From Perna viridis (taxonomy: Eukaryota), in contig CM074511.1 of the NCBI GenBank assembly GCA_037379345.1, positions 25,651,171-25,715,170 of the forward strand: a stretch of DNA of 64,000 bases, given 5' to 3'. The notes under the pieces were generated by a model. That model was not told where the DNA came from. It saw nothing but the letters and a program-made list of their open reading frames with translations, and ran no database searches. Shown one piece after another: positions 92 through 33,500 of the stretch; positions within the stretch are counted from its first letter, which is position 1; each line of letters opens with the position of its first letter. Both the position numbers and the translations under genes were made by a program.

Positions 92-379
92 TATTGAAAA
101 GGGAAATAACTCTTTCAATTGGTGCAAAATTTGGTTGATTTCTTAGGGAACTTTTAAATCATTTTCTGAGCCAGCCATTATCGATTCAGAAAAATTGTTG
201 CACTATTGGGCATACATTATTTCAAATTTGATATAGATGGTGCATAAGTTGTGAGCAAATTTGGTCTTTCCAATACATGTATCGACTTCCTGTCTTGTGG
301 GATGGCTGTACAAGTTGGGTATACCTAGCACTATAATATGTGCATCTTCATGTTGTAATTTTAAAAATCTAAATTAAAG

Positions 380-572
380 GTGCAGGTAAGAACCATGCTG
401 GAGCTAGCCATGCTGGTGAAGGAGGGGGTATAAGTGATTACTCTGGTGGAGCTGCTTACGATTCCTACCAGAAACCTATGTACATGGGATCTGGTGGCGA
501 TAACACTAAAGGAGGAGGATTACTCCATATCCAAGCTGCCAATGTTGTTCATAAAGGGGACATAACAGCAGA
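380..572 (+). CDS. exon w1, Gly-tract unit (GASHAGEGG...YDSYQKPMYMGSGG...)
   Basis: aag|GTGCAG acceptor (in-frame alternative at 386); donor GA|gtaagt; missed by the ORF track. Confidence 0.8.
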
Positions 573-3500
573 GTAAGTAGGATATATATTTAGTGTTAGG
601 TTTCTGGCTTTATCATTCCTTTCAATGTTCGGGTATCATGAAAGAAACTTAAATTGATATAGTCCTCAAATCCTTGAGTTTTTTTCTCTAATTTCAATAA
701 ATAAGCAAGCTGATTGGTTGAAAATTGAGTGGAAGAAAGACTTAGGGATTACTTCAAATTAAGTTTTATGAAGTTGGACATTGTTTCTCTTTGAATTAGT
801 GGACTTTAGGAAAATGTAGAATTGTAGAATATGACTTGATTGATTCAATGTGGAATTTATTTGTAATACAGTATCTCACTTTTTACCCATAATATGTGGA
901 GAGTTTCAGATAATCAAGATTGGAGAAAATTTTTCATGGCTAAAAAGGACAGAAAATGTGATATTTGTGTCTCTTAAAGGAGACGTGATGCAAAAATATC
1001 ATTTTTTAAACATTTATATTTATGAAAACTATAGTATGTTTAGATAGGAGTGTAACAAACGTTTTTTCATCAGGTTAGGGCTAAGTAAAGTTAGAATGAT
1101 TTATTTGTGTTATTACGACGATCTAATTAATATGCATAAATGAAATCCGGAAGTTAATAACACTCACTTACCATACATGGAAGTGCTATGTCATTGGTTC
1201 TCAATCTCCATTTGAGTGCATCGAAAATATATACACATGCCCGAAAAAATTAATAAATCTTTGAAAATAGCTTGCATATATGATGCAGAGTGGTCTAGTG
1301 ATCTGTGTATGAGTGTAATATTCATGTGTAAAAAGTAAGAAGACTAAAGTTCTTGTTTTCCGTCAGCTTTTCATTTTTTTAGGCATACATTCCCGCCTGG
1401 CGAAAATGCAACTACTTTGCACACTATTTTAGGACTTGAACAGGAGGGTACAACTAAAATAATGACATTCTGTGTATCGTTCTTTCTTTGACGCTAGGTT
1501 ATATCAATTAGCAAGCCCGGTAGGCTTAATTATGGCAAAGAGAAAGTGTAGGCGGCTTCTTTTATCTTAACATGGTTTGGCACCTCGTGACACAGGTATC
1601 GACACAGGTGTATAACTTGGATAATTGAAAAATAATTGCATTTCTTTTGTCTTACAAATTTTGAAATAAAACAATTCACATAGAGAATTTGACATGATAC
1701 ACAGTATATAATAGGTGACTCTATGTAAGTTTAAGTGAGCAATATTTTTTTATAGGTCAGTTAAAATATTTAATTTTAGCACAAAAAAAATTTAGAACAT
1801 GAGGAAGCTTTGGCACAAAACTCTTATGGGTTCTCAAATAAACCAATGAAAAATAAACATGTCAATATTATTCTGTTGCTGTAATTGCTGGATACAGGTA
1901 CACTTGTCAGGAGTAATATTCCGTTAAAAGGGGTGAAATCAATATTTTCATTGAAGATTGAGATCGGAAGTTTGAATCTTAGAATGGGAATTTTATTTAC
2001 TTGATGTAAAAAGTTCAATTGAACATGACAGAAAATAATGAAATATTTCTATGTAGTCTTCGAAAAGAAGTGGTGTCGTCTCTCTGTGGATTCTAGTCTT
2101 CATACTTGTAATAGTTAAATATTTCTGTCATTGTTTATCATTTTCTTCTCGAAGTGGTTTAAATTGATACAACTGTAAGTATATAAACTTTCAATATTTT
2201 CCCTCTCAGTTGTTGAAATCATGTAAAAAGTGCAGGAGCCCCACGCATTTCAACTACTCGATCTATGAATTGAGAACCAATGATGTAGTATGTTCATGTG
2301 ACCACATGGCTAATTCAAATTTGTATGGCTTGGTTCATCGTCGATTTTGAATTTATCTTTAATTAATTATTTAAATGACGTATGTGACTACAAGGGACAT
2401 TTTTATGATTTATATTTGGTGTAATAAATCCAATAAACCAAGAATTGAAAAAAAAAAAATTTGTGTCATGTCTCTTTTAACAATACTGTTTTTTTTTCAG
2501 TGGTGAGAGTGCTACATCAGCCAGTGGAGGAGGTTCTGGTGGTGGAGTATGGATCTCAGCAGCAACAAGTATTGATGTTACAGGTAAAAAATCTTGAAAG
2601 AAGGGGTATCATATTGGTCGGTTTATGTGTAAGTTTTTGTAAGAATCAGGCAAAATGGAAATTCTGAAACATGCCTGTCAAAACACCACCTATCTTACAA
2701 TATAATTTTACTCAAAGATACTTTGTTTATTTGAAAAGGCCATTGTTTAATCTCTGTATCACTGGATTTGCTCAGAAATTTTTCATCAGAATGTTTATAG
2801 AAAAATGAGGTATTTGACAGAATTATCTGCCCCATGAAATGTTCATTTTCAGTGTATTTCAATGAAATCATAACTCAGTTTTACCAACATATGGAAAATC
2901 TTCTCCTATTTCCTTGTTTCAAATTGCACTAGTCAAATTACACTTTCAAAGTGGAGGGGTTCAGAAAAAAAATCAAGAAATAGTTTGAAAAAGAGACAGT
3001 ATTTTGGGAACTTCATAGAGCTTGGTATTTCTCAGGCTTTAGTTGCTCATTGTATATTTAACATTTTCACATGACAATTAAATTATTTCATCATTAGTAT
3101 TATATAATTATAGGGAAAATAAGTGTTAATGGCGGTAATGGTATTGATGGTGGAGGCGGGGGTGGTGGAATTATCTCCCTTGAATACACCAATGGCAACA
3201 TTAAAGGTAACCTCATGGCCTATGGAGGTCATGGCAATGGCAATGGGCAACATGGTGCAGCTGGAGTTATCTACCTTGCCAAGGATATTAACTCCCTTTC
3301 ACCAGATAGAAAGGTTAGTCTTCAGTGATATACATGTATAAAGTTTACAGAAATTTTATAAATCAATATATTTAAATGCATTTATCATTACAATTTTACA
3401 ATTAAAGACCAAAATGCAAGTTTGAATTAATGTATTTTATAATTTCAATTTTGGCAAAAATAAAAGGTTACAATGATTTCAACATTTTGTTAATTGTTAT

Positions 3501-6500
3501 TTGAGACAAAAAAGAAATCTACCACTAATAAATGAGATTGAGAGGGGCTTGATTAAATTTCCTTGAAAATGAGTTTTTGTGAACTTCAGGATTATCATGG
3601 TTGACAGTAGCTTTATGAAGACATTTTTTTTTTTTAAATGTTTTACTTTGTTATATGCAAACAAATATTTAGAAATGTCTGTATTATGAAAATATTAAGC
3701 TACCACACAAATATTTCAAAAGACAAACTTTTAAAACAGCAATTTATTTTTGTACATGTAATACTTAAATGGATTTTTAAACATAAAAAGTTGCCAAATG
3801 TTTTATGACCAAAAATATAAAACAGAGCATTTATCCATTAATAGGTTATAATTAACAACAATGACGTACCAACTGATGCTTTTAGTAGAATTCCTGTACC
3901 ATCTACAGAATTTTCTGTTGAAATTGACCAAATTGACATCCAGACTGACGATAACGTAGCCTTTACTACCAGACCAGATATTGGCGCTGCTCTCAGTGTT
4001 ACAGTAGGGGACATAACTGGTACAACGCAGTCAAACTTCACCGTAGACAAATTTAATGAAGTCTACATTTCAACCAAATATCCATCAGCCGTATCAGAGC
4101 TTTCAATTAAATCATCCATTCACATTAGTAATTATGGTAAATTAGAGCTACCTGAAAATGTCATTGTTGAAAGAGGTCACATTCTGGAGATTTGTGGTAC
4201 GTTGATGTTTAAGACAAACAATGTATTTGTTAGAGATTCTGGTATTGTAAAAATAGGAAATCCAGCCCAGACAAACAGCTATTATGCTGGTACTAACACC
4301 CATAATCCACTGATGTGGAAATCATTAGTGATAGATTACAATGGGAAGTTTGAACACACATCCGAATGCATGAGTTCTGATCAGTCTACAATTTTACTGT
4401 TAGACCATTTAAATGTGTCAGCTGGCTACACTATCAATTTTAAGTCAATTCGTGTGAAAGCTTTACACACCAGTGAGATTAGTCCACTGTTGAATGCAAC
4501 TTGTGATAGCACAACAGATCTCCTCATCTACAGAGATACACAATGTGAACTGGCTGCCAAGGCCTACTCATATAACAGCATTGTCATAGAAGCTGGTGGT
4601 AAGCTTATCCTAACAGGAGACCCAGAAGGTAAAAATTTCACCAAAATCACAGTCACCAACCTCGAAATTAAGTATGGTGGGGTCATAGATGGAAAGGGTA
4701 AAGGTTATGTTTCTGGAGGTCCAGGTGAGCCTAGTGTTAGTTCATCTGGTGCGAGTCATGGTGGTGCAGGCAAGAATATTGCTAATCCAGTAGGAAAAAT
4801 TTATGGAAATATTGTCTCTCCAAAGGCTTATGGAAGTAATGGTCATGGTGCATCATCATTTTTAGGAACTGGTGGAGGCCAAATTGAACTTGTAGTTATC
4901 AATAAGTTCACATTGAATGGTGATATTGATGTGAGTGGATTTGATTCATCAACCTCTGGTGGCAGCGGTGGGAGCATACTAGTTACCACTAAGGATATGA
5001 CCGGTACTGGTACATTGTCAGCCAATGGTGGGTCAGGGGGAGGTGGAGGTGGAAGGATATCTGTGACTGTGTCAGAGGCTTACCGCTATGGTGGATTAAT
5101 GTCAGCATCTGGCAATGGTGCATCACCTGGTTAGTTAATATTATCAACTCTGGAATGATGAATAATTGATCCATAAGTTTGTTTTATTTTCTTATTTTAA
5201 GAATAAATTTTCATTCTTTGACAGCATGAATGAACATTTTTGAAAAACTGAAATCATGTGATTGAATGTTTTATTTATACAACTGAACTATGTTTAAAAC
5301 TCACTTAAGCCTGTAAGTTCTTAAGAGATACTTTAGATTGTTTGTTAATCTAAGTTTACTTCAAATTAACTGTGCTTATCACAAGCATTTTGAAACAAGT
5401 TTTAAATAGTTTGTAAGTTCATCTATTGAAATTCTTGTGGGGGGTAACTTGACAGTTTAAGCAAGTTTAATTATGGAGTTGAAGGTTATAAACTCTAAAT
5501 GCATAGTCGTTAATATTTGCAATTCAATTTTCAGGCACTGTGTATGTTTCTAAGACAGTTTCTGGGTCAGCATATACCACACTGTTGCTGAACCAGGCTG
5601 GTACTATAGACTTGATGGATGGACTTTCACTTCCAAGCTCACTGAATGAAGTCCAGCTGACCAATGGAACTTCTTTGTCACTTACAACAGACCTAGCTGT
5701 CAGTAAACTGATGTCAGATGGATCAGGAACTGTCACATTGTCTGACAATTCTAAACTGTCAATATCCTCATTTGATGACCTTAATCATGGTTGTCAGTGT
5801 AACTTTGACATTAAAGCTGGATCAACACTCCAGGTTAACACTGATTTTGACTTCACAGGAAACAATCCAACTCTAAATCTTGCAGGGTCTTTAATAGCGA
5901 ATACATTCAGAATCTGGGACCATGGAACTGTGACAGTCCAAAATACTGGAAACCTACAAGTCAACTCTCTGACTCTACATGAATATTCAACATTAGATTT
6001 GAAACCAGGAGCTATATACAGTAATGCTCAATCACTTACACTGGGATATAATTCCACATTAGTAGTGTATGATGACCCTTTAAGTTTGACCTTGACCTTG
6101 TTCCACATGAAGGTCAAATCAACATTAGATATTAGATCAGCCACTAAGACTATAAACCTTGAAGCCACTAATGTTATTATTGAGGATGATGCTGTATTGT
6201 CTGTTTCTGGTAGTGGGTCATTAACAGGTAAGTAAGGCAATATTTTTTAGTAACAGCATACCTGTTAACCTTTGGAACAGTCCATGTGGGAGACTCCCCC
6301 ATTGACACAGACTCATGTGGGGGATTTTTGCATAAACATAAATTGTTTATTTCAAAATTCAATTACTTCGTAAATTTCCACAGAAAACTTGGTAAGTTTT
6401 GCCAAAAACCTCCCACAAATCTAACATTTTTATGTTGGAAATTCTAATTTTTTTCATTGATAATGTGGGAATTCCCCTTACTGTGGGAGGGTTAACAGGT

Positions 6501-9500
6501 ATGGTAACAGTATATTGTTATGATGGGTTATGGTATTGCAGATTTCAATGAAATAATTAGATTAGCAAGGCCTTAAAAAAATAACATAAGTTCGAAAAAA
6601 AAATTGGGATTTTAAGAATTGATTGAATTTATCTGTTTGTGTAAATTGTTCAGTAGTGTAGTATGTTGTTTATGCAGAAATTATTAACAAGAGTATGGCA
6701 CCATTGAAACTTTCCACTGTGTTGATTATTTTAGGTTTGGGAGCAGGTGATGCAGAGAAAGGAGCCAGCCATGGTGGAGAAGGGGGAGACAATCAAGGCA
6801 CTACATATGGTTCAACAACTTCACCAACAGATGTTGGCAGTGGGTGTTCAACAGTTCGTGGTGGTGGTGTAATATCAATCAAGGCTACAACATTATCCAT
6901 CGATGGTGTCATATCAGCTGATGGTGAGAGTAGCTTCTCAACTGGTGCAGGCAGTGGAGGCAGTATTAAGGTCACAGGTGACAGTCTTGAAGGTCATGGA
7001 ATTATTTCTGTAAATGGAGGAAGTAGTACCAACAAGGGAGGTGGAGGTGGAGGTTGTCTTGCTCTAGATGTCAAGGTGGTGACCTCATTTTATGGTGGCC
7101 TTGAAGCAAAAGGCGGAAGAGGTGGGAAAAGCAGTGGGGCTGCTGGGACTGTTTATAAGTTGTACCAAATCACAGGTGGTGCATCAAAATCTGCATTGGT
7201 TATTTACAATGATGGCCTAGTTACAGATTCTCGGACAATTGTTAATGGTGTCATAAAAGTGTCAGAACTTGAAATAACAGGAAAGTCTAAGCTTATCTTT
7301 GACACCAGTGGTTCTCCAAATGTAGAGATAGAGCTAGTGGAAGGAGATAAAACGGGTTTACTGACAATTCAGTCAGGGCAGTACTTTGTCATTGCCACTA
7401 GCTATGGAACACAGTATGCCTTTTCTCTGCCATGTAAAATAGTTGTTGAAGGTGGAGGATATGCCACCCTGCCTGCTCAATTATTACTGGAGGATGACAC
7501 AGATGATGATGAATATAACCTAGATGTACAAGGAAATGTGATCGCACTGAGAAATCTTGTTGTGGGAGTGAATTCTAAGGCTTACTTAAGTTACAGTGCT
7601 CGCAGTGGTCTAACAACAACACAACCCTCTGATGTTGGAACATTCTCGCTAACTCAACTGGAAGTAACAACTGGTGGAAAGCTTGAAGTGTCTCAGGACT
7701 CAACTAGTAAATATACGTTAGATGTACTGGATGAATTGAATATCAAGTATGGAGGAGAAATTAGTGCAAGAAACTTATTCATCCAAGTTCCAACAATGCA
7801 GGTTGCATATGATGGCTTGTTAAGTGTTGATGGAAGCAATGGTAACCTTGGGACTGGGGCTGGTCAAGATGGCTCTGGAGGAAGTCATGGTGGTTCTGGA
7901 GGCACTTCCAGCTCTGGTGGGACAATAGTCAAACAATACACAGGAAGTCTATTCACTGCTGATGCCTTTGGATCCACTGGTGGTAACAAGTCTTTATCAG
8001 GTGTAGGCGGACCTGGAGGTGGCATGGTAAAATTGAAGGTCACAAAACAACTGACCTTGGATGGAGTGATTAGTTCCCATGGTAACAGTGGTATGAATGG
8101 TGGTGGAGGAGGGAGTGGTGGGTCTGTTTCTATTGAAATTGTAGACATGTTAGGAGCAGGATCAGTTTCTGTTGTTGGTGGGAATGCTATCGGTGGTGGT
8201 GGTGGTGGAGGTGGTGGTAGGATTTACCTCATGTGTACTGGTGATTATAACTATACTGGTGTCTACAAACTAAAAGGAGGTAACTCAGACACAGGTCAAG
8301 CTGGTGGTTCTGGTACAGCATACCTCCAATATCCTTACAGCAATATCCAGTTCCGTAAACTTTTTACTTCCAACTCAATGGTCACAGGACGTACTGTCGC
8401 CGCTACTTATTTTGATACACCTGGTACCCCTCTAGTTGAACTTGATGAGATGGAGGTTGGAGACAAGACAACAATAAAAGTTACAACAGCGGGTCTTCAT
8501 GTGATAGCATCCACCTTGGTATGTGGTGCAGATTCCCTCCTTAATGTACAGGATAATGTGATATTCAGTGCTGATGTTGAGAGCTCATACAGCAAACTAA
8601 CCTGCAGTTTACACATCGATGAACATGGGGAGGCAAGGTTACCAAAGACAGTTGAGTTACTAGGTGCTAATAATGAGTTCAAAGGTGAGGCTTTATCTCT
8701 TTATGATATTGAAACTAAATTATTTTTTTGTCAGAACAATTTGTTATGCTTATGAGTTCAAAGGTGAGGTTTTATCTCTTTATGATATTGAAACTAAATT
8801 ATTTTCGTGTCAGAACAATTTGTTATGCTTATGAGTTCAAAGGTGAGGTTTTATCTCTTTATGATATTGAAACTAAATTATTTTGGTGTCAGAGCAATTT
8901 GTTGTGCTAACAAATAGTCACAAAAATAAATGTCCACAAATAAATTCTTTTGTTATGGAATACATTTTGAGTATATAGTGTTAATCTTGATAACAAACAT
9001 AAGTAAAATTTGATTGATATCCTAAAATGCCAAAAATAAGAATGCAAAAATATGAAATGCTTTACAATAGAAGAAACATATTATTCAAAGCATGCATATA
9101 AAAGTTATTAAACACTCCAATATCTTGTTTACTTTTAACCTCCTAGTTATTATTATTTTGACACCTTTTGAGGAGGTAGACCTAGGGTAAGGGACATAAC
9201 CCATGAAGTCAGTGATATGTTTGTATCATATTCAATTTTACCAAAGCTTACCAAGCTTTCATTTGACACAGAATGAAATCAAATCTAAGTTGCTTTGATG
9301 CTTACATGACATTGACGTAAAATGCTGAGTACAAACGTTCCAATGCTTTGTAAGGGTTGTGTCCCTTACTTTAGGTCTACCTCCTTAAAGATGTATTATA
9401 TATGAAAATGAACTTGAGAAATAAAGAAAACTAAGATTTAGTGTCAACACAACATAATAGAAAATGATGACAGATATACATTAGATAAAACACACTCTGT

Positions 9501-12500
9501 AGTGTTGTGCATGGGATCAGAGTAGTAGGGACAACAATTCCATTATTTGGCCTTATAGATGGGTGAATGTCTATGAGTATTTTTTGTTGTTGATAAAATG
9601 TGACGTAATGAGTCAGAATTAGCCATGGTCTCAAAAAAGCATCATTTCCCCTATCTTAAGGTTTTATGTATGTGTTATAGTTTTATTATTCTAAAGTTAT
9701 GTTTACTTTACCCTTGCATACCAAGAGATGAACTCTATTCTTTCTATAATGTGCTTTACAGGAACTCTGACAAACATTAACTCCCTGATAGTTTCATCAG
9801 GACAAAAGGCCACATTTTCCTCTGTCACCAGAACAGCTACCTACAACAATGGAGTGTTTACTGCCCAGGAGGCAGGAGCATACAGATTTGCCAGTTTCAC
9901 AATCAAGGACTATGCCACTGTGACATTTGAGACCACTGGGAAGGTCTTACAGCTGACAATATTGGAACTGCACTATGGGTCAACCCTGAAGGGAGAGAGG
10001 ATACTACTACAGAGTAATGAGATAACACTACAACCTGGTTCTACTATAGATCTATCTGGTGGTGGTCATGCTGCTGAGAATGGACCTGGTAAAGGTGCTC
10101 AGGTAAGTCCATTGTATAAATAATAGGGGTCTCATACTTCTATGGAGTAATTAGATCATGCTTCAGCCTGGTCCTATTATAGATCTAATTAGTGGTGGTC
10201 ATGCTGATGAAAAAGTAAAGTTGATCTGGTCAATCGCTTGTGTATATAAAGTGGTTTTATTTCATATTTATACAGGAATGAGTTTCAGGTATTGGTCAGT
10301 TACTGTAAACATACTAATTCACTATTTTCACGGTAAACAGAGAACCGAGAAAAATAGTACATGTACATGCGAAATTGATTTTTAACACTATATAACACTA
10401 ATCATTTTTTTGAAGCCATGAAAATTGATATCTGCAAATATGTTCTCTTGACAGAATCCGTGAAAATTAGCAACCACGAAAATTAATATGTTTACGGTAT
10501 GTACCATTATTTATGTACGGTCCATACCATAGTTATTTAGTCCAAATACCTTTTTGGTCATATTTGCTAGCCCTTTCAGTTTTCTCTACCTGATAGTGCA
10601 TTTAACAAATTATCTCCCCTGAGATGCTGGTTTGATTATCTCATTTAGCAATGTTCCAAATCAAATCATAGACCAAGTCAATAATTCAATTCAGTATCTG
10701 AAATTATATCTGATCATTAATGTGATAGTATTTTATACATCTTTGGTGTAAAAAAAAATAATGGCAATTGAAGAAAGCTTTTTGATTTTTACAGATAAGT
10801 AGTCATGACCTTGCAACAGGAGCAGGATATGCAAGTCTCGGTGGATCTCCATCAGAATCAAACTCTGGTGGCTCCATCTACAATCTGACCAGAATACCTG
10901 GAGAAGAAGGAAGTGGGGGAGGTAACTCTATATCAGGAGTTGGTGGAGCTGGAGGTGGTTATCTGAAGATTGAAACTTTCTATGACCTTACGAACTATGG
11001 TAAAGACACTCTAGTAAAAAGTTACTCTTGTATGAAAAAAAAATGATAATATTATACCCCCACTCAAAAGGTGGGTGATATATTGGAATGACTTAGTCTG
11101 TTTGGGTGCTTTTGGGTGTTTGTTACTTTGAATGTATTATTTTGGTTATTTTATGTTCTTTGTTGTGTGTGTTTTTTTTCCATGTCTGGTCTTTGTCCTT
11201 GGATTACGTTCTTTTGATTTCCACTAGATCCTTGGTCCCCTAGATTTCTCTTTCACTATATGGATTGGTAGGCCATTTTAAACTCTTGGGCATTGAATAA
11301 ATTACATTGAATCTCTAATGAGGACCTTGGCTTTGGTTACAAATATCTTGGTTCCCAATAATTGGATTGACTTCAAATTCAATGTGTGGCTTAATATAGA
11401 TGTGGCATACATAGTGAGTAATTTTGTTGCTCTTTGATATCAAGTTCCTGTATGAGTGGGGGTATGCCAAATACGAAAATATGTGCAACTTCAAGGTTAT
11501 TATGATATATTTACAGAAAATTTAAGTAGCCACTGTCTTATTAAAATTATCAGTAGACCATAAATTTTTTTTACTCTTTTTTTACAGCCAAACTAGTTTA
11601 AATTAGCAGACTTATTTTAATTAGACTGAAGCATCTTAGTTTAGTATGCAAGACAAGTTGTCTTTTCATAGCAAGGGTTCAAATATGTAATTCCAACATA
11701 TCGTGACTTTGTGTCTATGGAACTGTATATTACACAAAATGAAGGGCATGTGTTAGATCTTGAATTACAATGTTTTAAAATCTATTTGAGAAGTTATTAC
11801 TTAAATATTGTTATTAGTTATGGTTATTAAAGAAATAAAGGATCATTATAGGTGCAATAAAGGTTGATGGGTCTGATGGATCTGGAAGTGGGGCTGGTGG
11901 TGGCAGTGGTGGGACCATATTCTTGAATTGTAGAGGTTTAATTGGAGATGGAAGCCTATCTGTCAATGGTGGCAAAGGATCAGGTCAAGGAGGAGGTGGA
12001 TCTGGTGGGAGAATGAAACTTATCCTTAAAGAAAGGTATTTTATATGAATTACAATAATTTGTTTGAACGTGTCTAATTTTTTCTTACAGTGTTTTTATC
12101 TTCTTTGAAATGATTCTGCCCTTTTTTCCCAATGTAACAATATTAATTGATCTGCACCCGGATTCATAAAACAATCTCAAATTGAGATTTTCCTAAAATT
12201 CTTCAGTTTTCCTCAAATTTTCAATTTCAAGCAATTTGATTGGTCGAAATTTTAGTTGAGGAAGGATTTGAGGAAAATCTCAGTTTGAGATGTTTTATGA
12301 AACTGGCCCCAAAATTTTAATTTTGTCATAGAGATACTTTTCATTTTAATGTATACATATTAAATCAATGTTAGCATATTGTTTTACCATTTATTGCATC
12401 TTGATCATTTATTATACCTCCTGCTTTTAAAGAGACCATTTGTTTGTCCACATATTTTGTTATGTTTCTCTGCAACTTCTTATCACAGCTACTTGATATT

Positions 12501-21500: not shown

Positions 21501-24500
21501 ATTATTGTTATTCTCAGCTTTTGTGAAAGTCTACAATGTTTCTAATGCATTAAAAATATTCTATTTTTTAAATGTAACATGCTTCATATTTTTAAAGCCA
21601 TTCCTGTGATAGAAATGATTTGTGCTATGTGTCGTTAAAAGATTTTACCAGGATTATATATCAGATGACAAAATGATTGTCATGAACTTCAGTAATAGCT
21701 TTTTAGGTGTTAAATATGGATATTGCTTTTAGGTACCCTTGGATTTGGTCATCTATCAATGGAAGCCAAGGCAGAAATCATCCATGAGACAGTCCTGGAT
21801 CTAGAGGTCTCTGATTTAATGATGAGGTATGATTCCCACATCACTGCTGATAACATCACTATAGCAGCTGGTAAATTACACATGGAAGGAGAGGCTAAAC
21901 TGAATACAACAGGAAGGAGTGTTGTATGGGCATCACCAGGGGATGGAGTGGTGGACAGTAGTGGAGCAGGAGTTGGAGGCAGCCATGGTGGATATGGTGG
22001 TGGTCATGTTCAAACTAACTATTCTACAAGTATGTAAAAGGAAAGGAGGAAACAAAATAATTGTAGAGGATTGAGCTTATTTATGACTACTGGTGTAAGC
22101 ACAAATCTAGTTTTTTTATGAACTTTAGGGGCCTATGAACTTGGACAATATTCAACAAGTACAAAAAGGTATCTGTCAAAACAAATTGGTTTGTAGTATA
22201 GAGGAAAATGAATATGGTAAAATATTTTCATAATTTAGCTTTGATAAACAAAGTCTGTTTGAATTGATTACTTTAGACGATTTGAAAGATTTGAAAACCT
22301 AAAGATTTTTTTTAAATTACATACTCTCTTGTTTTATGCTTCTTCATTTAAGGTACTTGCAAAATTTTGCTCTTCTGTTTATACAGGCAGTTGCTATGGA
22401 TCCTACAAGAAACCTGTACATCCTGGCAGTAAAGGAGGCGGTAACTCAGGAGGCCAAGGAGGAGGTGTTATTGACATAGATGTAGCTAGATACCTTCACC
22501 TGGATGGAATTCTGATGAGTCTGGGTAACAATGCCACAAATGACAACAGTGGTGGTGGCAGCGGTGGGAGCATTCACATTGTGGCTGTAAACTTCTCTGG
22601 ACATGGTCTAGCAACCACAGAGGGTGGCTATGGGCACAACCTTGGACATGGTGGAGGTGGAGGCAGGATAGCTGCTCACGTTTCATGGTTCAGAGAGTAT
22701 ACTGGAGAATACAAGACTTATGGTGGCCATGGTGGTTCAGGAAGAACTGATGATGACAAAAATGGTGCAGCAGGAACTATCTATTTTACCGACTCCAACA
22801 GTCAAGGTCTAAATGCAAAGGAACTTGTTAATACAACAGAAGGCCTAGTTTACAAAGATGGTTTTGTCAAGTTGTACATTGACAATGACAACAGAAATCA
22901 CAAAGCTCCAACCATTATAATGACTGATGATGGAATTCATGACTTTGAGTTTGATGAGTTAGAGGCTAACAACCATGCTGTGCTACAGATATATGGATCA
23001 TCATCAGAACTTGTGGTACATAAATTCAGTGGAGATAGGACTGGGCTGATGCATATATTGGAAGGACAAGTCATTCATGTAGAATACAAAGAATCTACAA
23101 CAGGGTATACAGTAGCTCCAGTAAGCTATAAAGTTGAGAAAGGAACAGAAATTGTCCTACCATCCACAGTCATTATGCTAGGAACCAGAAGTGAACTCCA
23201 TGGTCTAATGACAAATGTACAAAATCTTACCATTGCTGAGGGTGCTGATGTAGAATTTTATTCTACTTCTCAAACAGCACTGAGAGAAAATGGATCATAC
23301 ATACACATGACAAAACCAGGCAACATCAGCCTGACTATATTCACAGTCCAGAGAGGATCTGTTGCTAGGTTTACAGAAACAGAGGCAAATTTAGTGTTGC
23401 AGCTGATCAAGTTCCATATTATGTTCCAGGGCAGAGTTTATATGACTGATGGTACCATCTTCTCAGCAGAGGGTGTAGTAGAAAGTGAAGGTTTTCTGTA
23501 CCTAGACTACATGGGATATGGATCTGAAACAGGACCTGGAAACGGAACAACAGAGGGACCATTGGGTTATGGAGCAGCCCATGGTGGACATGGTGGAGCT
23601 CCCAAACCAAACACTGGTGGCATTCCCTATGATTCTGTCTATGTACCTAAACATGAAGGAAGTGGTGGTGGTAATGGTAAAGGGAGAGGAGGCAGAGGTG
23701 GAGGTTATCTTGTATGGAGGGTCGGAACTCATCTGTGGATTGATGGTGAGGTAACCATGCAGGGAGAGAATGGGCAAGGTCTGAATGCTGGTGGTGGCAG
23801 CGGTGGTGCTATTGTTATTGAGACTCTAAACTTCACTGGATATGGTCATGTTGATTGTAGTGGAGGAAATGGATCAAGCACAGGAAAGGGAGGAGGAGGT
23901 AGTGGAGGTAGAATTGGCATTCTCATTCACTTTGACAGAAGATTTGCTGGCCTTTTGAATGCTTATGGTGGTCATGGATCAGGAGGAATGGAGTCAGGTG
24001 CTGCTGGTACTGTGTATATTGAAGAAACAAACAGGGGACCAGACTATGAGGATATCAAATATGACAAAGTACTGAATGAGACCAATAGGGTTGGTAATCA
24101 TCGTAGAATTTTGATTGACAACAACCATACTGACAAACATCTTTATGTTAATCATGGAGAACCTTGGCTGTATTCAAGTGTTACTGAAGGGGCTACCACT
24201 AATTATGCTTTTGATGAAATGGATCTTCGAGGCCATGCTAATGTAATCTTTGACTACCCACCGTCTGGTGAAGGTGTTGAAGTTATTGTCCATGAAATGC
24301 AGGGTGACTTGACTGGATTGATTCATGTAAGGCAGAAACAAATCCTTTATGTTGAAGTATTCGAATCTGTTTCAAATGAAACTTATGCTCCTGTCAGTTT
24401 CAAAATTGATGCCAAGTCTGAAGTTCAGTTCCCAGAAATTGTAAACCTGGTTGGTCGAAGAAATTGGTTTGCCGGTCTGATCACAGGCATTGAAGAGTTG

Positions 24501-27500
24501 TTGATCCGTAGAGGTGCAGATGTTTTATTCTTCTCTACTGGCCATACTGCTCTCCTTACCAATGGTACAAGATACAGAATGACTACAGAAGGAAATTTTG
24601 AGTGGGCCATTTTGAAAGTGATGAGAAATTCAATAGCTAACTTTATTCAAATTACTAATCCATTGTCAATAACAGTTGCAAAATTCTATGTCAAGTATGA
24701 AGGGCTTCTGTTGATGAACCTTGCCCTTATTAGGTCTAGCTATGGTAGTGTGGAAGCTGAAGGAAAGTTAAACCTTGATGCTGTTGGTAATCCAGCTGAA
24801 AGCGGTCGTGGTGCTGGTTGGACAGTTTCAGGGAAGGGTTGTGGAGCAGGTCATGGGGGTTGGGGTGGTGGGCCATCCCCAGATTTTGGTGGAGTTCCTT
24901 ACAATTCTGTCTTTAAACCTGGAAATGGCACAGCCTATCCCACAATGGAGTACACAGGCAGTGGTGGAGGTAATGGTGGGGGTACAGGTGGGACTGGAGG
25001 GGGATTCTTGGTGTGGGAAATTGGAGATCTTCTTGAACTGAATGGAATCTTGACTTTGAATGGTGGTGATGGTCAGTCAAGCCATGCTGGTGGGGGTAGT
25101 GGAGGTAGTTTGTTGATAACTGCCCTTAACATGTCAGGACATGGGGACATCTACGTTGCTGGTGGTAATGGTGTTGGTGATGGCTATGGTGGTTCTGGGG
25201 GTAGAGTTGGTGTTCACTGTGAATGGAGATATTCATTTGGAGGAACATACCATAACTATGGTGGAAATGGTGGTGGGACATTCGAGTCTGCTAAAGTAGG
25301 TGCTTCAGGAACAACATTCATACAGGAGAATACTCGACCACTTGCTTACAGAAAGAAAAAATATAATTCAGTTTACAACATGACCTATTTTGATGTTGAT
25401 CATAAATACTTGCATACAGACAATCGTGGGAAGTATAGTCCAGCAGAAACATTGATTATGGAGAATTACAAATACAACTATGTGTTTAATGAAACAGAGC
25501 TCACAGGAAGTACTAGACTTAAAATTTACCATCCTAGCAATGCTACCAGAGTTGATGTGGATATTCTAAGATTCATTGGTGACAAGACCGGAGTACTAAT
25601 AATTCAGAATGATCAACATGTGGTTGTTGAAATCACAGAGGCTATATTCAACAGAACTGAAGCACCTTGTGGTTTTGACTTGAGAGCTGGTGGTGAGATT
25701 TACTTGCCTGCAGAAACCCACTTGCTTGGAGCAGATAGTACATTTGCTGGTTTGATAACTGGTGTGGCCAATTTATTTGTTGAAGATGCCACAGACATTG
25801 AATTCCACTCAACTGCATACACTGCACTGGTTGAAAATGGCACATACTACAATGTGAAAGAGGAAGGAAACTTTGCTTGGGACACATTTACAGTTAAGAA
25901 TGGAGGAACTGTTGGCTTTTTGAAAATCACCAAAGCTATGCACATTTGGAACAGTGAAACTAGGGTAAAGTATGGTGCCAACCTGTATATGAATGATGCC
26001 ATCATAGATTCATCTTATGCTTGGATTGAGAGTCGGGGAATTTTACATCTGAATGGTCATGGACATAAGCCAGAGGAAGGATTAGGTGCAGGAAGAACTA
26101 TAAGTAGCCAAGGTTATGGTGCTAGCCATGGTGGTTATGGTGGTGGGTCCAATCCATCCTTACCAACAGAACCTTACAATTCAGTATATGACCCTGCAAT
26201 ATTTGGCAGTGGTGGAGGTAATGGGAGTGGAGTAGGTGGCAATGGAGGTGGGCTGCTTCTATGGAATATCAGTCAAAGGATGGAACTGAATGGTTTACTT
26301 GCTCTACAAGGCAATAATGGGCAATCTGGCAACAGTGGTGGTGGTAGTGGTGGAAGTATCAACATGTTTACCACAAACTTTACAGGACATGGGGAAATCA
26401 ATGTTAGAGGAGGAAATGGTTCTGGTTCAACAGGTGGAGGGGGTTCAGGAGGCAGAATTGGTGTTCACTGTAGATACAGGTACAGCTATGGAGGAAAGTT
26501 CACCAACCATGGTGGTGATGGTGGCAGTGCAGCAGAACTGACTCATGGTGGAGCAGCTGGAACTACTTTTGTCGAAAACAACTTCAGACCTTTAGAGTAC
26601 AGAATACTGAAGTACATGAAAGGTACAAATAATACCTACCTTCAAGTTGATCACCGTTATCTTCACATTGACAATGATGGTAACTTGGTCTCTGTCCCAA
26701 CAGTAATTATGGTAAATGAAACAACTGACTATGAATTTGATGAGGTTGAAATAGCAGGATTTGCAAGAGTAATAATTTACCATCCTAATAAACCTGTTCA
26801 AATCATTATCCATAGGTTTATTGGTGATCGTACAGGACAGCTGCATCTAAGAAGTCACCAAAAAGCGATTGTTGAATATGTTGAATCTATCAGAAATGTC
26901 ACTGAGGCACCAGTGAGCTACATTATTGACTATGGAAGTGAAATTGTGTTCCCAACAGAAGTTCACATGCAGGGCATCAATACAATAATAGATGGATTGA
27001 TGACAGGGGTCCACCATTTCTACATTGAGGATGGCACTGTTGTCAGTGTATCATCAACCTCTCAAACTGCACTACTTGATAATGGAACATATGTTTTTGT
27101 CTCAGAGGAAGGCGATTTCGCACTACCAACCATCAACATCAAGAAACTTGGAACTTTAGAGTTCAGAAAAATTTTGACAGATTTCACTATTACAGCATCC
27201 TTTATGGAGGTAAAATACCAAGGAACAGTACTTATGAATCATGGTTACATGGATCTAGGGGCCTTTGACATTGAACCAGAGGGAGAATTGAACCTTGATG
27301 GTAGAGGCCATGGCCCAAGTACAGGGCCAGGAGTAGGTAGTGGCTATGCTGGCGGTAGTTATGGAGGTGTTGGAGGAGGGTCTGATGACTCTCACCCATA
27401 TGGATCTGTGTTTTCACCTATGGACCTTGGCAGTGGAGGAGCTGGATCTAACAGTGGATCAGGTGGAGGTTTCCTCAAAATGATGGTTGGTAGAAATATC

Positions 27501-30500
27501 CACATTGATGGTGAGATCAGTTCAGGGGGTTCAAGTGCTACCAGCTCTTCTGCTGGTGGCGGTAGTGGAGGGAGCATATTCATCACAGCATACAACATTT
27601 CTGGTCATGGAACTATCAATGTAAATGGTGGGAAAGGTTTTGGCTCAGGAGGTGGAGGTAGTGGAGGCCGTATTGCATTACATGTTGGATTTTTCAATTT
27701 GTATGGAGGCAGGTATCTATCACATGGTGGTACAGGGTCATCAGTTGGAGGTCCAGGTACTATCTACAAGTATGAGTCACAGAGAGGACCACAGTACAGA
27801 GAACTGAAATACAACCCCAGACTCAACAGGACAATGATTGAACCAGAACATTCTAAACTACTTGTGGACAATGGAGCATTGAACACCATAAATCCAGCCA
27901 TGGTGATGGAAAACAATAGTATTTATTATGAATTCAATGAAGTTGAAGTAGAGGGCTACTCATATATTCATTTCTACCATCCACATGGTGTAGATAATGT
28001 GACAGTTTTGATTCATGAGCTTACTGGGAACAAAAAGGGAATGGTCAGAGTGCAGTCCAGACAACAAGTCATTGTTCACTTTGTTGAATCAACCCACACC
28101 TACCTTGATGCTCCATGTGGTCTCCATGTTGATGTGGGTGGAGAACTTGTATTACCAACTGAATTTATTCTTACCACTGAAAAGTTCATTCTTAGTGGTA
28201 GACTTGTTGGAGTAGAAAATATCTGTATAGAGAGAAATGCAGAACTTATTCTCTCTGAACATGCTCACACAGGTGAATTGAGATCATTGGTCATGTGGTA
28301 TACAGACAAATCAGTACATCCTTATACTCCAGGGGTTGTAACCATAGGAACAATTACTGTTAATAACAAAGGTCTAATCACGGTTACCATGGATCCTCTC
28401 TTCCCTACCATAACAGGAGGAAAATTTACTGTGAAAAATGGTGGCACTGTGGAAACTGACAGTTTAAAGGTCAAGTTGAATTCAACTAGGATGACTGTTG
28501 AATACGGTGGAACTGTACAAGGAGATGGACATGGATATCCTAAAGGTCAAGGTCAAGGAACAGGTAGTGACTCAACAGACTGGGCTTCAGGAGCAGGACA
28601 TGGCAGTGCAGGTATGTTCTAATTATTTTGATCCAATAAAAACTTGTCGAAACCAACCCTTTTGAACTGATGGATTTGTTTAGTCAAGACAGGTATTTGC
28701 TTTACAAAGGTTCACAATATATTTTTTATTGTATGATGGGACTACATATAATGTCTGTTTAAGGCATGTTATAACCCTATTTAACAAGTAGGTAGTATAT
28801 TGGAATTACCTTGTCTGTCCTTCATTCTGTCTGTCCCGTAAAATTTTCATCTCAATTATCTCGGATCCCAATGGATGGATTAGTTTCACATTTGGAGTGT
28901 GGCTTCATATAGATGGGGCATATGTTGCTCACCAATATCAACATCCTGTTTCCTGGGTCTTAGCCATTTTTCACTGTATGGAATGATAGAGAAATTTTTC
29001 GTCACAAAAATCTTGGTTCCGAATTGATTGATTTTAAATTTGGTGTGTGGCTTCATATAGATGAGGCATAGCTTTTTAGCAATTTTAGTTGCTCTCCCAT
29101 GTTAACTTACTGCATAAATTGGGGATTGTATTTTGGATAAGGTAAATGAAATCAATTTGTATTTATTTCTTTTGATATAAAAATGAAATATTAATTCAAT
29201 ACATTTCTGTAGAAAAAAAATTATTCTAAGGAAGCTTACTATATAATATGTTTCACTAAGACAGATTTAAAATCTACAGATACTGCAAAGCCATGCAAAA
29301 AAATATATACTGCAACTGATCACATGACTGATCTAAATAAATTCAATTATATCCTACTTAATGAGATGACTTAGAACTATTGTGGCTAGAAATATCAGAA
29401 TTAATATGAGTCAAACAAAGGGACAAAACATAGAATAGAATGCAACAGGACAACAAAAAATTTGGTGAAGTTACACATAGCATAATGGAAAAAAGTTGTC
29501 CACATGGAAATGACCAGCATAACGTTTTAGTTGAATTGTAACATGCATATTTGAGAAACACTTGACCTACTGTCAGTTTTTGTTGACCATACAGGGGGCC
29601 ATGGGCATGACAGTGCTACAGCAGGAAGTCAGTACGGCAGTGTTATGTCGGCTACAGAACCAGGCAGTGGAGGTGGGGGATCGTATGGTGGCTCTGGTGG
29701 CAGTCATGTTACAATCAACGTTGCAGAGGTGATTATGGTTTATGGTTTGGCCATTGCATTTCTTCAAGCTGTTTTTTGATGAATTATCAATTAAGATTAA
29801 AAAAAAAAATCACTGAAGCAAGATGTAGAAACAAATGCTTTTATTCAGTATATTACTGAGAACTATGCTAAAAATTATTACCTACCGGGTAATTGATAAG
29901 ATAACAGCAACATTTATCTGGTTTTGAAATGACCATATTATGTTCATTTTCACTAACATGTTCTAATTTTAATTTTATTTTAAGGAGGTAGACCTAGGGT
30001 AAGGGACATAACTCATGAAATCAGTGATATGTTTGCATCATACACAATTTCACCTAAGCCTCTCAAGCTTTCATTTGAAGCACAATAAAATGAATCCAAG
30101 TTAATTAGATGCTTACATAAGATTGATGTAAAATGCTGAATACAAACGTTCCAGTGATTTTTATGAGTTGTTTCCCTTACCCTAGGTCTACCTCCTTAAC
30201 CTTTGTTATTTTGATAATTAAGAAGGTAGACCTGGCATAAGGGACATAACTCTTCAAATCAGTTATAATGTTTGTATCATATAAAATTTCATCAAAGCCT
30301 TTCAAGTTTCCCTTTGAAGCAGAATGAAACCAGTCCGGGCTACTTTGATGCTTACATTAGATTGGTATAAAATGGTAAATACAAACGTTCCAATGATTTG
30401 TAAGAGTTGTGTCCCTTACCCTAGGTCTACTAACTTAAATGGTATCAGTCTTGTATTACATATTCCTGAGCGGATGTACGTCAAAACATGCAGCTAAAAA

Positions 30501-33500
30501 ATATAGCGCCCTCTTTTTTGCCTTTTCCTGTTTTTGTTTCTTGCCAAATGACTATCATTTGTCATCACAAGTACAGGGTAAATATCAATCTATGACACAA
30601 AAAAAAATTGTTTTTGAGAAGAAACAGTATTTTCATGAAAAATAATGCTTCAGAAAAGGGGTCTACTTTATGAACTCAAAATAAAAGTGAAAGTAGAAAA
30701 AAGTCTATTTTTAGTTTGACCTGTCCTGGTGTACCAAAGTTTGTCCCTTTTTTTTCTAAAATGGACCTAAAAATTATTTTTGACATTTCCTTATTTGAAA
30801 AACATGGTCAAGAGTTAGATTAAAACTCCTGTCTATTTTTTTAAAAAATCATGAAAATTTAAGGTATACTATAGAAGCCTATGGGGGCAAAGAATACAAG
30901 ACTGAGACCAAATAGTATTTTGTAAGATATATATTTGTACATTACAGGAATTACGCCTTGATGGTACAATAAAAACTACAGGATTGAGTGGGACATCCTA
31001 CCATGGTGGTTCTGGTAGTGGTGGTAGTATTATGATGACCTTGGGAAATCTTAAAGGTTATGGAACAGCATCAGCTAATGGAGGCATAAGCCATTCATGT
31101 AAGGAGGAGATCAAATGTTTTTACTTTTTTTGTCAATATATTCACTGTTTCAAAAAAAAAATAAAATTATTTGATGTTATGATATTTTATTAACTAAATG
31201 AAGTACTGTAAATACTAATGTCTTTGTTATTGCTAGTTATAAACAAGTTCACCTTAGAATAAACTTTTTATCAAATATCCAAATATTGTAAATATAAAGT
31301 ATGCCCCTTTCAGGATTATAGAACCAATATGTAAATAAAAGAGGTTTGAAAACTGGAGAGTAGAATTAGATGGTTAGTTATATAGTGATCTGTATTAAAA
31401 AAAAATCAATAGAATTCAACTTTGATTAATTTTTTAACCATCCCATTATTTCACTACAAAAAGATTTTATTGAATATATTGAGTGAAGTTATCCTTAGCA
31501 TAACATCATAAATAAGTTTTGGGGGAGAAGGTCATCTAAGTTATCATTACTTGTGGCAGACCCTCATTTTAAGTTTCAACTATATTATGCTGAAACGTAC
31601 GGTATTTGACTTTTCAGCAAACGGTGCAGGATCAGGAGGCAGAATATCAATCTACCTATCAGAATACATGTTATTCAATGGAAACGTCATAGCGACGGGT
31701 GGGGGAGGCTCATACCCTGGTGGTCCTGGCACTGTATATGTTCAATTAACCGTAGGAGATGATGAATGGCGAGAGCTATGGATAGACAACCTGAACAGAG
31801 GCAGCATCAACACATGTTCATTCAGAACAAATATAGACAATGTATACCTTGACAATATACACCTGAACAACAGGGCATGTGCAGCTCCAACACAGGTAAA
31901 AACAAAAACAAGTTCTTCTTGATAGGTAACGAACTGTTTAGTTTTGTGGTAGGTTAGACAAAATGTATCTAGTGATTACTGTTATCTGTCCATCTAATTG
32001 TCTAATTATCTTTTGTCCCTCCACAACTTTTTCTTTACAATTTTTACTATAAGTAGTGATCACAGCCACTTGATATTTTGACAGAAACTTAAAAATGCCA
32101 TATTGTTGAATTTAATTTCAGATTGAATCAACGTTTCACAGCTTTGTTTTAATATATTTTTACCATAATGTAACTGGGGTGTTGAGGGGGTATATAAAAG
32201 TGGGCTTTTTTCATTTTTTCTAGTTCAGCTAGCCATGACGTATTAATATCATTTAATTACGTGCCAGTTTTACAACATATTTTCCATTTCATAACTTGAT
32301 GATGTTTAGTTTTTGTATTTACAGACTCCAATATACTATGACCACATTCATGAAGCCAATGGTCTGCTCTACATTAGTAATGGTATCACATTATACATTG
32401 CCGATAATCGCCTTCGTGATGGGCTAGGATCTAACATTTACACAGTAGAAGGGTCAAAGGTCATTTTCCCACCTACTAGCTACGTTGAACAAGTGATGAC
32501 CATTAAAGGAGATGTGTATGGTCTGGAGCATTTGTACACAAGAGGAACAACAGCCTTATATTATTCTGGTTCTGCAATGGGCAACATCGGCACACCTTTG
32601 CCCGGCAAATACCATCTGTCTACCATGACAGTTCTGAACCAAGGAAAAATTCAGCTGATTGATGATGATTACACTACCAGTGAAGGACTTGATGTTTTTA
32701 CTCAATATTTCCATGTTCAGCACAGCAGTACAGTGGAGGTTACATATTCAGGGTCTCTGGTTAGCTGGATTATGGATGTTGAAAAAGCTGGAATAATAAC
32801 TGGAGATGGAAAAGGGTATGAAAAGGCAACTGGACCAGGTGCAGGTACTACATGCAGTAATGATGCAGGGGGTGGAGCTGCTCATGGAGGCCATGGTGGA
32901 AATGGATACAATTCATGCGGCAGTTATTGTACTGGAAGTTCCTCAACTTATGATGACAAATGTCTTCCATGGACTGCTGGTAGTGGTGGTGGTAGTTGTA
33001 GACATGGTAATGCAGGCTCAGGAGGTTCAGCATTCAGAGTTGTATCTTCAAATGCTATGTTTTTGGAAGGTCAGGTTCACATGAAAGGTATAGGGTCTGG
33101 AGCAGGAGGAGCAGGAAGTGGTGGTTCTGTGTGGATGGACAGTGAAATTATTGAAGGATGGGGAATTTTAAATGCAGATGGAGGTGATGGTGCTGGAACA
33201 GAAAGTGCATGTTCTTGTTATTTCGTTGACTGTTGTCGTAGGCATTACAGGGCTGGTGGTGGTGGGGGTAGGATTAGGACTTTCACTGGTAACTATACAC
33301 ATAAGGTTCTGAAATTCCAACGGTCTGTATCTGGAGGAAATGGAATAAGTCCAGCAACAGATGGAAGTAGCGGTACATTATGTGAAGCTAGTGCCAACCT
33401 TTGCAATGGTCGTGGAACTTTCTTATCAGGATCATGCACATGTAATTCTGGTTTTGTTGGCAGTGATTGTCAATATTATTGTGATCCAACTACAACCTGT

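Follow-up and report, generated by a model that had tools for sequence, protein, structure and literature searches.

A tandem array of glycine-rich units on one strand

We analyzed a stretch of 64,000 nucleotides from Perna viridis (assembly GCA_037379345.1, contig CM074511.1; hereafter, the window), which a whole-assembly search placed at C1:25651171-25715170 and which carries a tandem array of protein-coding units of ~400 residues, each combining a glycine-rich module with a beta-rich stretch. All nine long open frames of the window lie on the + strand, its DNA has 31–43% G+C and a steady positive GC skew, and this is the look of a single large eukaryotic gene with big exons. An initial annotation of the same sequence had proposed at least 16 tandem units. 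A first profile hidden Markov model (HMM), based on the five units that the largest exon contains and run against all stop-to-stop fragments in six frames, gave collinear matches at 391-33380 on the + strand only, with E values down to 6e-197. A second profile (A1), built from ten units with 27–49% pairwise identity to the first unit and run on the extended locus, delimited 16 units in the window, at 373-33398 and again on the + strand only, in agreement with the earlier count; with those outside the window the whole gene has 31. The units are mutually 27–49% identical. All 16 anchor positions given in the initial annotation lie inside profile units, the motif order that it described is that of the alignment consensus, in which the FDE, GDxTGLLH, and KYxG motifs of the beta-rich stretch are also present, and its motif string is visible in the translations of the two largest frames. 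Its spacing of 411–425 residues in the big exon proved slightly too narrow, the GGGSGGS anchors there being 406–433 residues apart. In a regular-expression scan of the window, GGGSGGS-type and GxxGGRI-type anchors occurred on the + strand only.

The units, all on the + strand, differ in how they are divided among exons. Unit 1 (373-4480) is made up of four exon segments (373-573, 2490-2591, 3110-3322, and 3845-4480) that match A1 collinearly over model positions 25-359, and unit 2 (4652-6199) of two segments with profile matches (4652-5131 and 5525-6199). Unit 3 (6704-7762; E 1.5e-99, model positions 24-382) lies whole within the exon 6662-8752, while the A1 profile assembles unit 4 (7787-9988) from 7787-8725 plus 9707-9988 and unit 5 (10792-13787) from four small exon segments. 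Units 6 (13818-14954), 7 (14979-16166), and 8 (16194-17336) share one exon and match A1 over 13818-17336 with E values of 4e-103 to 6e-121. Unit 9 (18357-21440) consists of at least four segments (18357-18524, 19347-19619, 20120-20506, and 21063-21440); the anchor near 18480 was skipped by the HMM, and the small open reading frame (ORF) at 18357-18524 bears a GPG...GAGH motif. Units 10 (21855-23438), 11 (23463-24710), 12 (24735-25985), 13 (26010-27230), and 14 (27255-28451) were delimited by A1 over 21855-28451 with E values of 6e-129 to 4e-150, and a single open frame of 2,119 codons (22263-28619) holds units 11–14 and most of unit 10. Unit 15 (28473-32735) is in pieces at 28473-28608, 29592-29726, 30946-31098, 31618-31891, and from 32321 onward, with RNA joints (see below), and unit 16 (32763-33398), the last of the array, comprises the glycine module only (model positions 4-178).

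The array belongs to one giant gene

Running the A1 profile on the fetched flanks, we found a further 15 units upstream of the window, which brings the gene to 31; among the assembly matches listed, the + strand series begins ~80 kb upstream of the window, and the 30 kb before the first unit hold no profile match. Contigs of up to 11 kb from four runs of four studies, which we take to be RNA because they lack introns, were compared with window positions 28001-34000. They skip four GT..AG introns (28608^29592, 29726^30946, 31098^31618, and 31891^32321) and preserve the reading frame, with the junction 31098^31618 present in three of the four runs, and the exon phases computed from these joints agree with the HMM frames of each piece. 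Within the intron between 29592-29726 and 30946-31098, window positions 29800-30600 have a contig depth of 4,000–27,000 in all four runs, compared with ~15–35 on exons, together with many loose ends and non-canonical internal joints; this segment resembles a transcribed repeat or mobile element of high abundance located within the intron.

An RNA contig runs unbroken across 32321-33751, and the array passes directly into a different type of domain: unit 16 and teneurin-type EGF repeats (33369-33935, + strand; PF23106 and PF25024, residues 353-540 of the ORF 32313-33935) lie in the same exon and the same open frame. Another exon of this gene with teneurin-type EGF repeats lies at 41314-43122 (+ strand; PF25024, E 1e-53), and Pfam identifies VWD/LamG_3/EGF super-repeats, the membrane-proximal part of the ectodomain, at 48610-58182 (+ strand), which run on beyond the window to a predicted transmembrane helix. 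The latter is a 21-residue Ile/Cys-rich segment (mean hydropathy 3.71) ~4.2 kb past the window end (L021:4180-5664), followed by a low-complexity Ser/Pro/Lys-rich tail of ~470 residues and then by the stop codon, which is the C-terminus of the gene. Discoidin (PF00754) and G8 (PF10162) domains, known in relatives of this protein, were found nowhere near the gene in a whole-genome search. Because the transmembrane segment and the tail lie beyond the EGF, VWD, and LamG domains, the product would be a type I membrane protein whose outermost extracellular part is the array. The window probably encodes part of this distal ectodomain, which belongs to a single giant protein that crosses the membrane once.

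The units are predicted to form a continuous beta-helix

We modeled the units with AlphaFold2; in all searches and models, spliced exons were kept separate. For one model, the input was a 20-row alignment of a unit plus the next glycine module, with rows from the window, a second mollusc-like species, Actinostola, and Salpingoeca rosetta; the models me1883942bf37 and mb8deae86d42f derive from units 12 and 13. This stretch of 1.5 units was predicted with a mean pLDDT (predicted local distance difference test) of 88.2 and a pTM (predicted template modeling score) of 0.82 and is almost wholly beta, with short regular strands throughout residues 196-441. For the glycine module alone, a 44-row alignment that included bacterial and archaeal modules gave a pLDDT of 92.5 and a pTM of 0.85, and the five models agree (91.4–92.5). 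DSSP assigns strands in the module at 87-98, 121-130, 154-163, and 190-195, plus short ones, and the long strands recur with a 33-residue period. Each long strand leads through a G-x-G turn into a short strand and then into a return of 15–17 residues that starts with GGxG and ends with GGG(S)GG. The returns and module residues 19-86 are predicted with pLDDT values of 95–98 and are neither strand nor helix by DSSP. Conserved glycine tracts lie on both sides of each long strand, and glycine makes up 27.5% of the module compared with 6.8% of the remaining unit. From these models we read the module as a flat two-layer solenoid, half of it beta-sheet, with a glycine face that may resemble polyglycine-II (PGII).

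Structural comparison points in the same direction for the unit as a whole. The weak matches in the Foldseek list for the 1.5-unit model are nearly all beta-helices, and in a VIA-align comparison of this model with 48,161 chains the top matches are right-handed parallel beta-helices. Adhesin stalks are among the higher-scoring matches: HMW1 (13.6; 252), EtpA (13.5; 282), Awp1 (11.7; 188), TibA (10.8; 262), FHA (10.5; 165), and pertactin (10.0; 246; the two VIA-align values are given for each). The model shares with beta-helices both a fold match over most of the unit and a regular coil periodicity. The alignments cross the beta-rich stretch into the next glycine module and, in the case of TibA, run from the first module to the second. 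Because they cross this border, the stretch between glycine modules appears to be beta-helix as well and the unit boundary not a domain boundary. The initial annotation had expected a folded beta-solenoid rod rather than disorder, and the AlphaFold2 models and VIA-align bear this out; the separate spacer of ~250 residues that it described does not survive as such, since in the models it joins the glycine module without a break and is an ordinary three-stranded beta-helix.

The foremost alternative is that the glycine module is a true PGII or polyproline-II (PPII) helix bundle of the springtail antifreeze, phage gp38, or ALK type, inserted between beta-rich domains, in line with the initial annotation. 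In its favor, residues 19-86 and the glycine tracts of 15–17 residues in each coil are modeled with pLDDT values of 95–98 and have neither helix nor strand by DSSP; among solved structures, an antifreeze protein with a PPII bundle matches the module best. Plain beta-helix fragments, however, come within 1 Z unit of this match, its 28% identity is mostly glycine, and aligners can superpose PPII helices on beta-strands, as the two share an extended conformation. Moreover, DSSP finds three beta-strands of 10–12 residues plus short strands within the module, which does not fit a PPII-only build without beta-sheet of the sfAFP, GrAFP, or gp38 type. Compared with the known PPII bundles (springtail antifreeze proteins 7JJV and 2PNE/3BOG, phage S16 gp38 6F45), one layer is here predicted to be ordinary parallel beta-sheet, and the module has ~200 residues, a conserved signature of its own, and a position within a beta-helix.

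The ALK/LTK glycine-rich domain is a PGII honeycomb (PDB 7N00 and 7NX1; PMC13243192), and the initial annotation had drawn on it for comparison. Both proteins are extracellular and have several conserved poly-glycine tracts beside EGF-like modules. The protein described here differs in that it has neither a TNF-like partner domain nor a kinase (downstream, Pfam finds only EGF_TEN, VWD, and LamG_3, followed by the low-complexity tail) and in that its short tracts (GGxG and GGGSGG) take turns with long beta-strands. The 50 best structural matches of the module include no chain of ALK or LTK, and the profiles A1 and A3 matched none of 177,635 distinct PDB sequences at E ≤ 1 or at E ≤ 10. Kinship with ALK/LTK is thus not supported, and we regard a pure helix bundle as unlikely; a beta-helix that incorporates glycine-faced coils remains our preferred reading.

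The module recurs in uncharacterized proteins of animals, a choanoflagellate, bacteria, and an archaeon

At E ≤ 0.01, Pfam has no family on any unit-bearing exon, and an NCBIfam scan of the units returned nothing meaningful; together with the empty PDB sequence searches, this supports the earlier description, in which a poorly characterized module forms a long array in an animal protein. The lack of any lyase, hydrolase, PbH1, Beta_helix, NosD, or autotransporter-repeat family of Pfam on the units also bears on a second alternative, in which the units are carbohydrate-binding or carbohydrate-cleaving beta-helix modules (of the pectate or alginate lyase, tailspike, or C-5 epimerase type) that bind or remodel a polysaccharide matrix. 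We consider this quite improbable: the folds named are beta-helices as well, but the conserved residues are almost all glycine plus one Ser, Arg, Pro, Tyr, and His, with no acidic catalytic set, 31 tandem copies suit a structural role better than an enzyme, and the higher-scoring structural matches are adhesin stalks.

Among 1.84 billion representative proteins, 11,538 clusters (at 50% identity) match the unit profile at E ≤ 1e-3, where the weak matches may include compositional ones, and 3,184 at E ≤ 1e-30. Many of the matches cover only profile positions ~3–205, i.e., the glycine module. The named relatives, all uncharacterized, come from Saccoglossus (hemichordate), Actinostola (sea anemone), Dreissena (bivalve; 54% identical), Apostichopus (sea cucumber; under the record name Tenascin-X), and S. 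rosetta (choanoflagellate), and further orthologs reach 74–99% identity. The Atlas clusters indicate Mollusca as the probable group of the host. In Actinostola, neighboring gene models have units, EGF_TEN, and VWD/LamG_3 in the same order as here, and this counterpart also matches PF26129 (Vwde). Complete 400-residue units are likewise present in S. rosetta, and an F5/8 type C (discoidin) domain lies upstream or N-terminal in the homologs of Actinostola, S. rosetta, and Saccoglossus. Literature searches with four homolog locus tags found no paper, and the general literature on PGII and PPII bundles that we searched leaves the module unmentioned.

Giant Verrucomicrobiota-type bacterial proteins, suggested by the initial annotation as carriers of the motif string, do contain the module. 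The relatives from Verrucomicrobiota/Limisphaerales have ~2,200 residues, and one of them has seven modules with a 260-residue period and is encoded near uvrB and other bacterial genes; a genome-contig search for relatives with the bacterial protein P0021 returned none. An archaeal relative of 4,952 residues has 11 modules and a DUF2341 domain (metagenome contig L015, gene 4001-18859); the contig is taken as archaeal because LSM, PC4, and ribosomal S8e genes lie on it. A DUF4258/MazE-like pair is located just downstream of this gene. In the bacterial, archaeal, and hemichordate homologs, Pfam recognizes accessory domains only (CarboxypepD_reg, DUF2341, F5_F8_type_C, and a weak G8). If DUF2341 belongs to the concanavalin/LamG-like clan, its presence here mirrors the combination of glycine module and LamG_3 in the animal protein. 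The prokaryotic taxonomy is based on a few named proteins, gene neighborhoods, and Atlas cluster labels.

When modules are aligned to each other, those of the bacterium (Verrucomicrobiota) and the archaeon are 32–38% identical to that of window unit 13, and the alignment has 10 invariant and 20 nearly invariant columns, nearly all glycine plus a single Ser, Arg, and Pro; for the His and Tyr positions, conservation reaches only the 60% consensus level. This pattern counts against a third alternative, namely that the glycine tracts are low-complexity, flexible, or elastomeric sequence of the silk or plant glycine-rich type and the confident models an AlphaFold artefact. Glycine does amount to 26–28% of the module, and AlphaFold can over-predict regular solenoids for repeats. 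Yet the glycines are fixed column by column across animals, choanoflagellate, bacterium, and archaeon, the pattern is kept among units only 27–49% identical, simple repetition of the kind found by TRF is absent, there being instead a 400-residue period with an inner period of 33 residues, and the five models agree closely (pLDDT 91.4–92.5), all of which makes this explanation very improbable. A disordered glycine-rich protein was rejected on the module alignment. A calcium beta-roll of the RTX or PE_PGRS type was also rejected, as the coil has 33 residues, no acidic column is conserved, the nonapeptide GGxGxDxUx with its conserved Asp is lacking, and no RTX family of Pfam matches.

Units pair one-to-one across distant species

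We calculated a maximum-likelihood tree of 31 complete units; it is the product of a quick search, has several long branches, and was midpoint-rooted for drawing only. Every window unit has a single partner from the second mollusc-like species (8 of 8 pairs, with support of 94–100 in the Shimodaira–Hasegawa-like approximate likelihood ratio test, SH-aLRT). Pairs also form with Actinostola for unit 4 (SH-aLRT 99) and for the clade of units 12 and 13 (99), and with S. rosetta for units 10 (99) and 14 (98). Species labels do not cluster, with 10 changes for 10 window rows. Because units pair one-to-one across species, they had diverged before these lineages split and have not been homogenized since, which argues for vertical descent of the array in Holozoa. 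Recent tandem amplification and recent transfer from bacteria were both rejected on the unit tree.

An inverted second copy and neighboring genes

A mirror copy of the whole unit array lies on the − strand ~120 kb downstream, tail to tail with the first (C1:25803476-25917716; loci L002, L005, L006, L008, and L010). Across five stretches of 4.2 kb the DNA identity is 99.0–99.2%, and the ORF lengths are slightly different (2108 vs 2119 codons). This copy may have arisen by inverted duplication very recently, or the assembly may have joined two haplotypes into a palindrome. In each of three runs, the 124 bases at window positions 33722-33845 are covered by two short contigs, of which one matches the window exactly and the other shows four differences; transcription thus appears to come either from both alleles or from both inverted copies of the gene. 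Two + strand ORFs with leucine-rich repeats, 12–21 kb past the window end (L028:1912-3774 and L022:2-1369; LRR_8, E 3e-42 and 2e-30), are the next genes after the giant gene and lie between it and the center of the inverted repeat.

Discussion

We propose that the 31 units of ~400 residues would stack into one long right-handed parallel beta-helix, i.e., a rigid rod. Each unit would consist of ~215 residues of ordinary three-stranded beta-helix and a glycine module of ~200 residues, the latter being a series of broad, flat coils, each with ~33 residues. In each coil, a beta-strand of 10–12 residues would form one face and lead through a tight G-x-G turn into a short strand, and the conserved tracts GGxG ... 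GGG(S)GG would form the return face, where glycine would allow the two layers to pack without side chains; these tracts may adopt an extended, PGII-like conformation. The rod would be joined to the teneurin-type EGF repeats, the VWD/LamG super-repeats, the transmembrane helix, and a cytoplasmic tail of ~470 residues. Because the rod sits on an EGF/VWD/LamG stalk, the array would project far from the cell surface. With ~15 coils of 0.48 nm per unit, 31 units would, as a rough estimate, span ~200 nm, provided that they are collinear. Its role could be that of a structural spacer, an adhesion element, or an organizer of the matrix, as for the beta-helix adhesins of bacteria.

The beta-helix stalks of HMW1, EtpA, FHA, TibA, Ag43, and pertactin and of the Candida Awp adhesins are the nearest known kind, although they have no sequence relationship to the units. 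In contrast to these stalks, the array described here belongs to a eukaryotic host and is anchored by a transmembrane helix rather than exported by type V secretion; it has a super-period of 400 residues in which narrow coils alternate with wide, glycine-faced coils of 33 residues; and it is fused to EGF, VWD, and LamG domains. VWDE-like and teneurin-like proteins share EGF_TEN, VWD, and Laminin_G_3 domains with the C-terminal half of the gene, but those names fit the EGF/VWD part only, and none covers the glycine/beta-helix array of 12,000 residues.

Several points weigh against this reading. Foldseek searches of the PDB with both models returned nothing at E ≤ 0.001, and the fold rests on predictions, with no solved relative by sequence. 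The label 'RNA?' of the runs is the tool's guess, and the N-terminus and signal peptide of the protein were not located. The repeats, their expression and splicing, the order of domains, the predicted fold, and the deep conservation come from the analyses presented here, whereas the PGII geometry is inferred and the length of the rod and its biological role are argued by analogy with the beta-helix adhesins of bacteria. Taking both sides together, we nevertheless think it likely that the 31-unit array forms a rigid rod on a giant membrane protein with a structural, spacing, or adhesive role.

A beta-helix surface rod is a known kind of structure, and the glycine module has a real chance of being a new hybrid fold. 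In a fuller version of this idea, which we put forward tentatively and hold to be possible rather than probable, the module would be an undescribed family found in all three domains of life, a flat hybrid solenoid with one face of parallel beta-sheet and one of stacked PGII-type tracts; its 31 units would have been kept unit for unit in holozoans since before animals; and the ~200-nm rod on its transmembrane protein would be an unstudied cell-surface structure, perhaps of microvilli or of the choanoflagellate collar. Few natural domains with PGII or PPII bundles are known, and a beta/PGII hybrid solenoid, if true, would add a building principle for protein design. With a model of the module, thousands of giant surface proteins now called 'hypothetical' would also receive an annotation in one step. 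The one-to-one pairing of units from the choanoflagellate to molluscs and cnidarians indicates that long tandem arrays can persist without homogenization, and the array suggests that many marine invertebrates share a conserved giant surface protein, so far unstudied, that would be genetically testable in S. rosetta.

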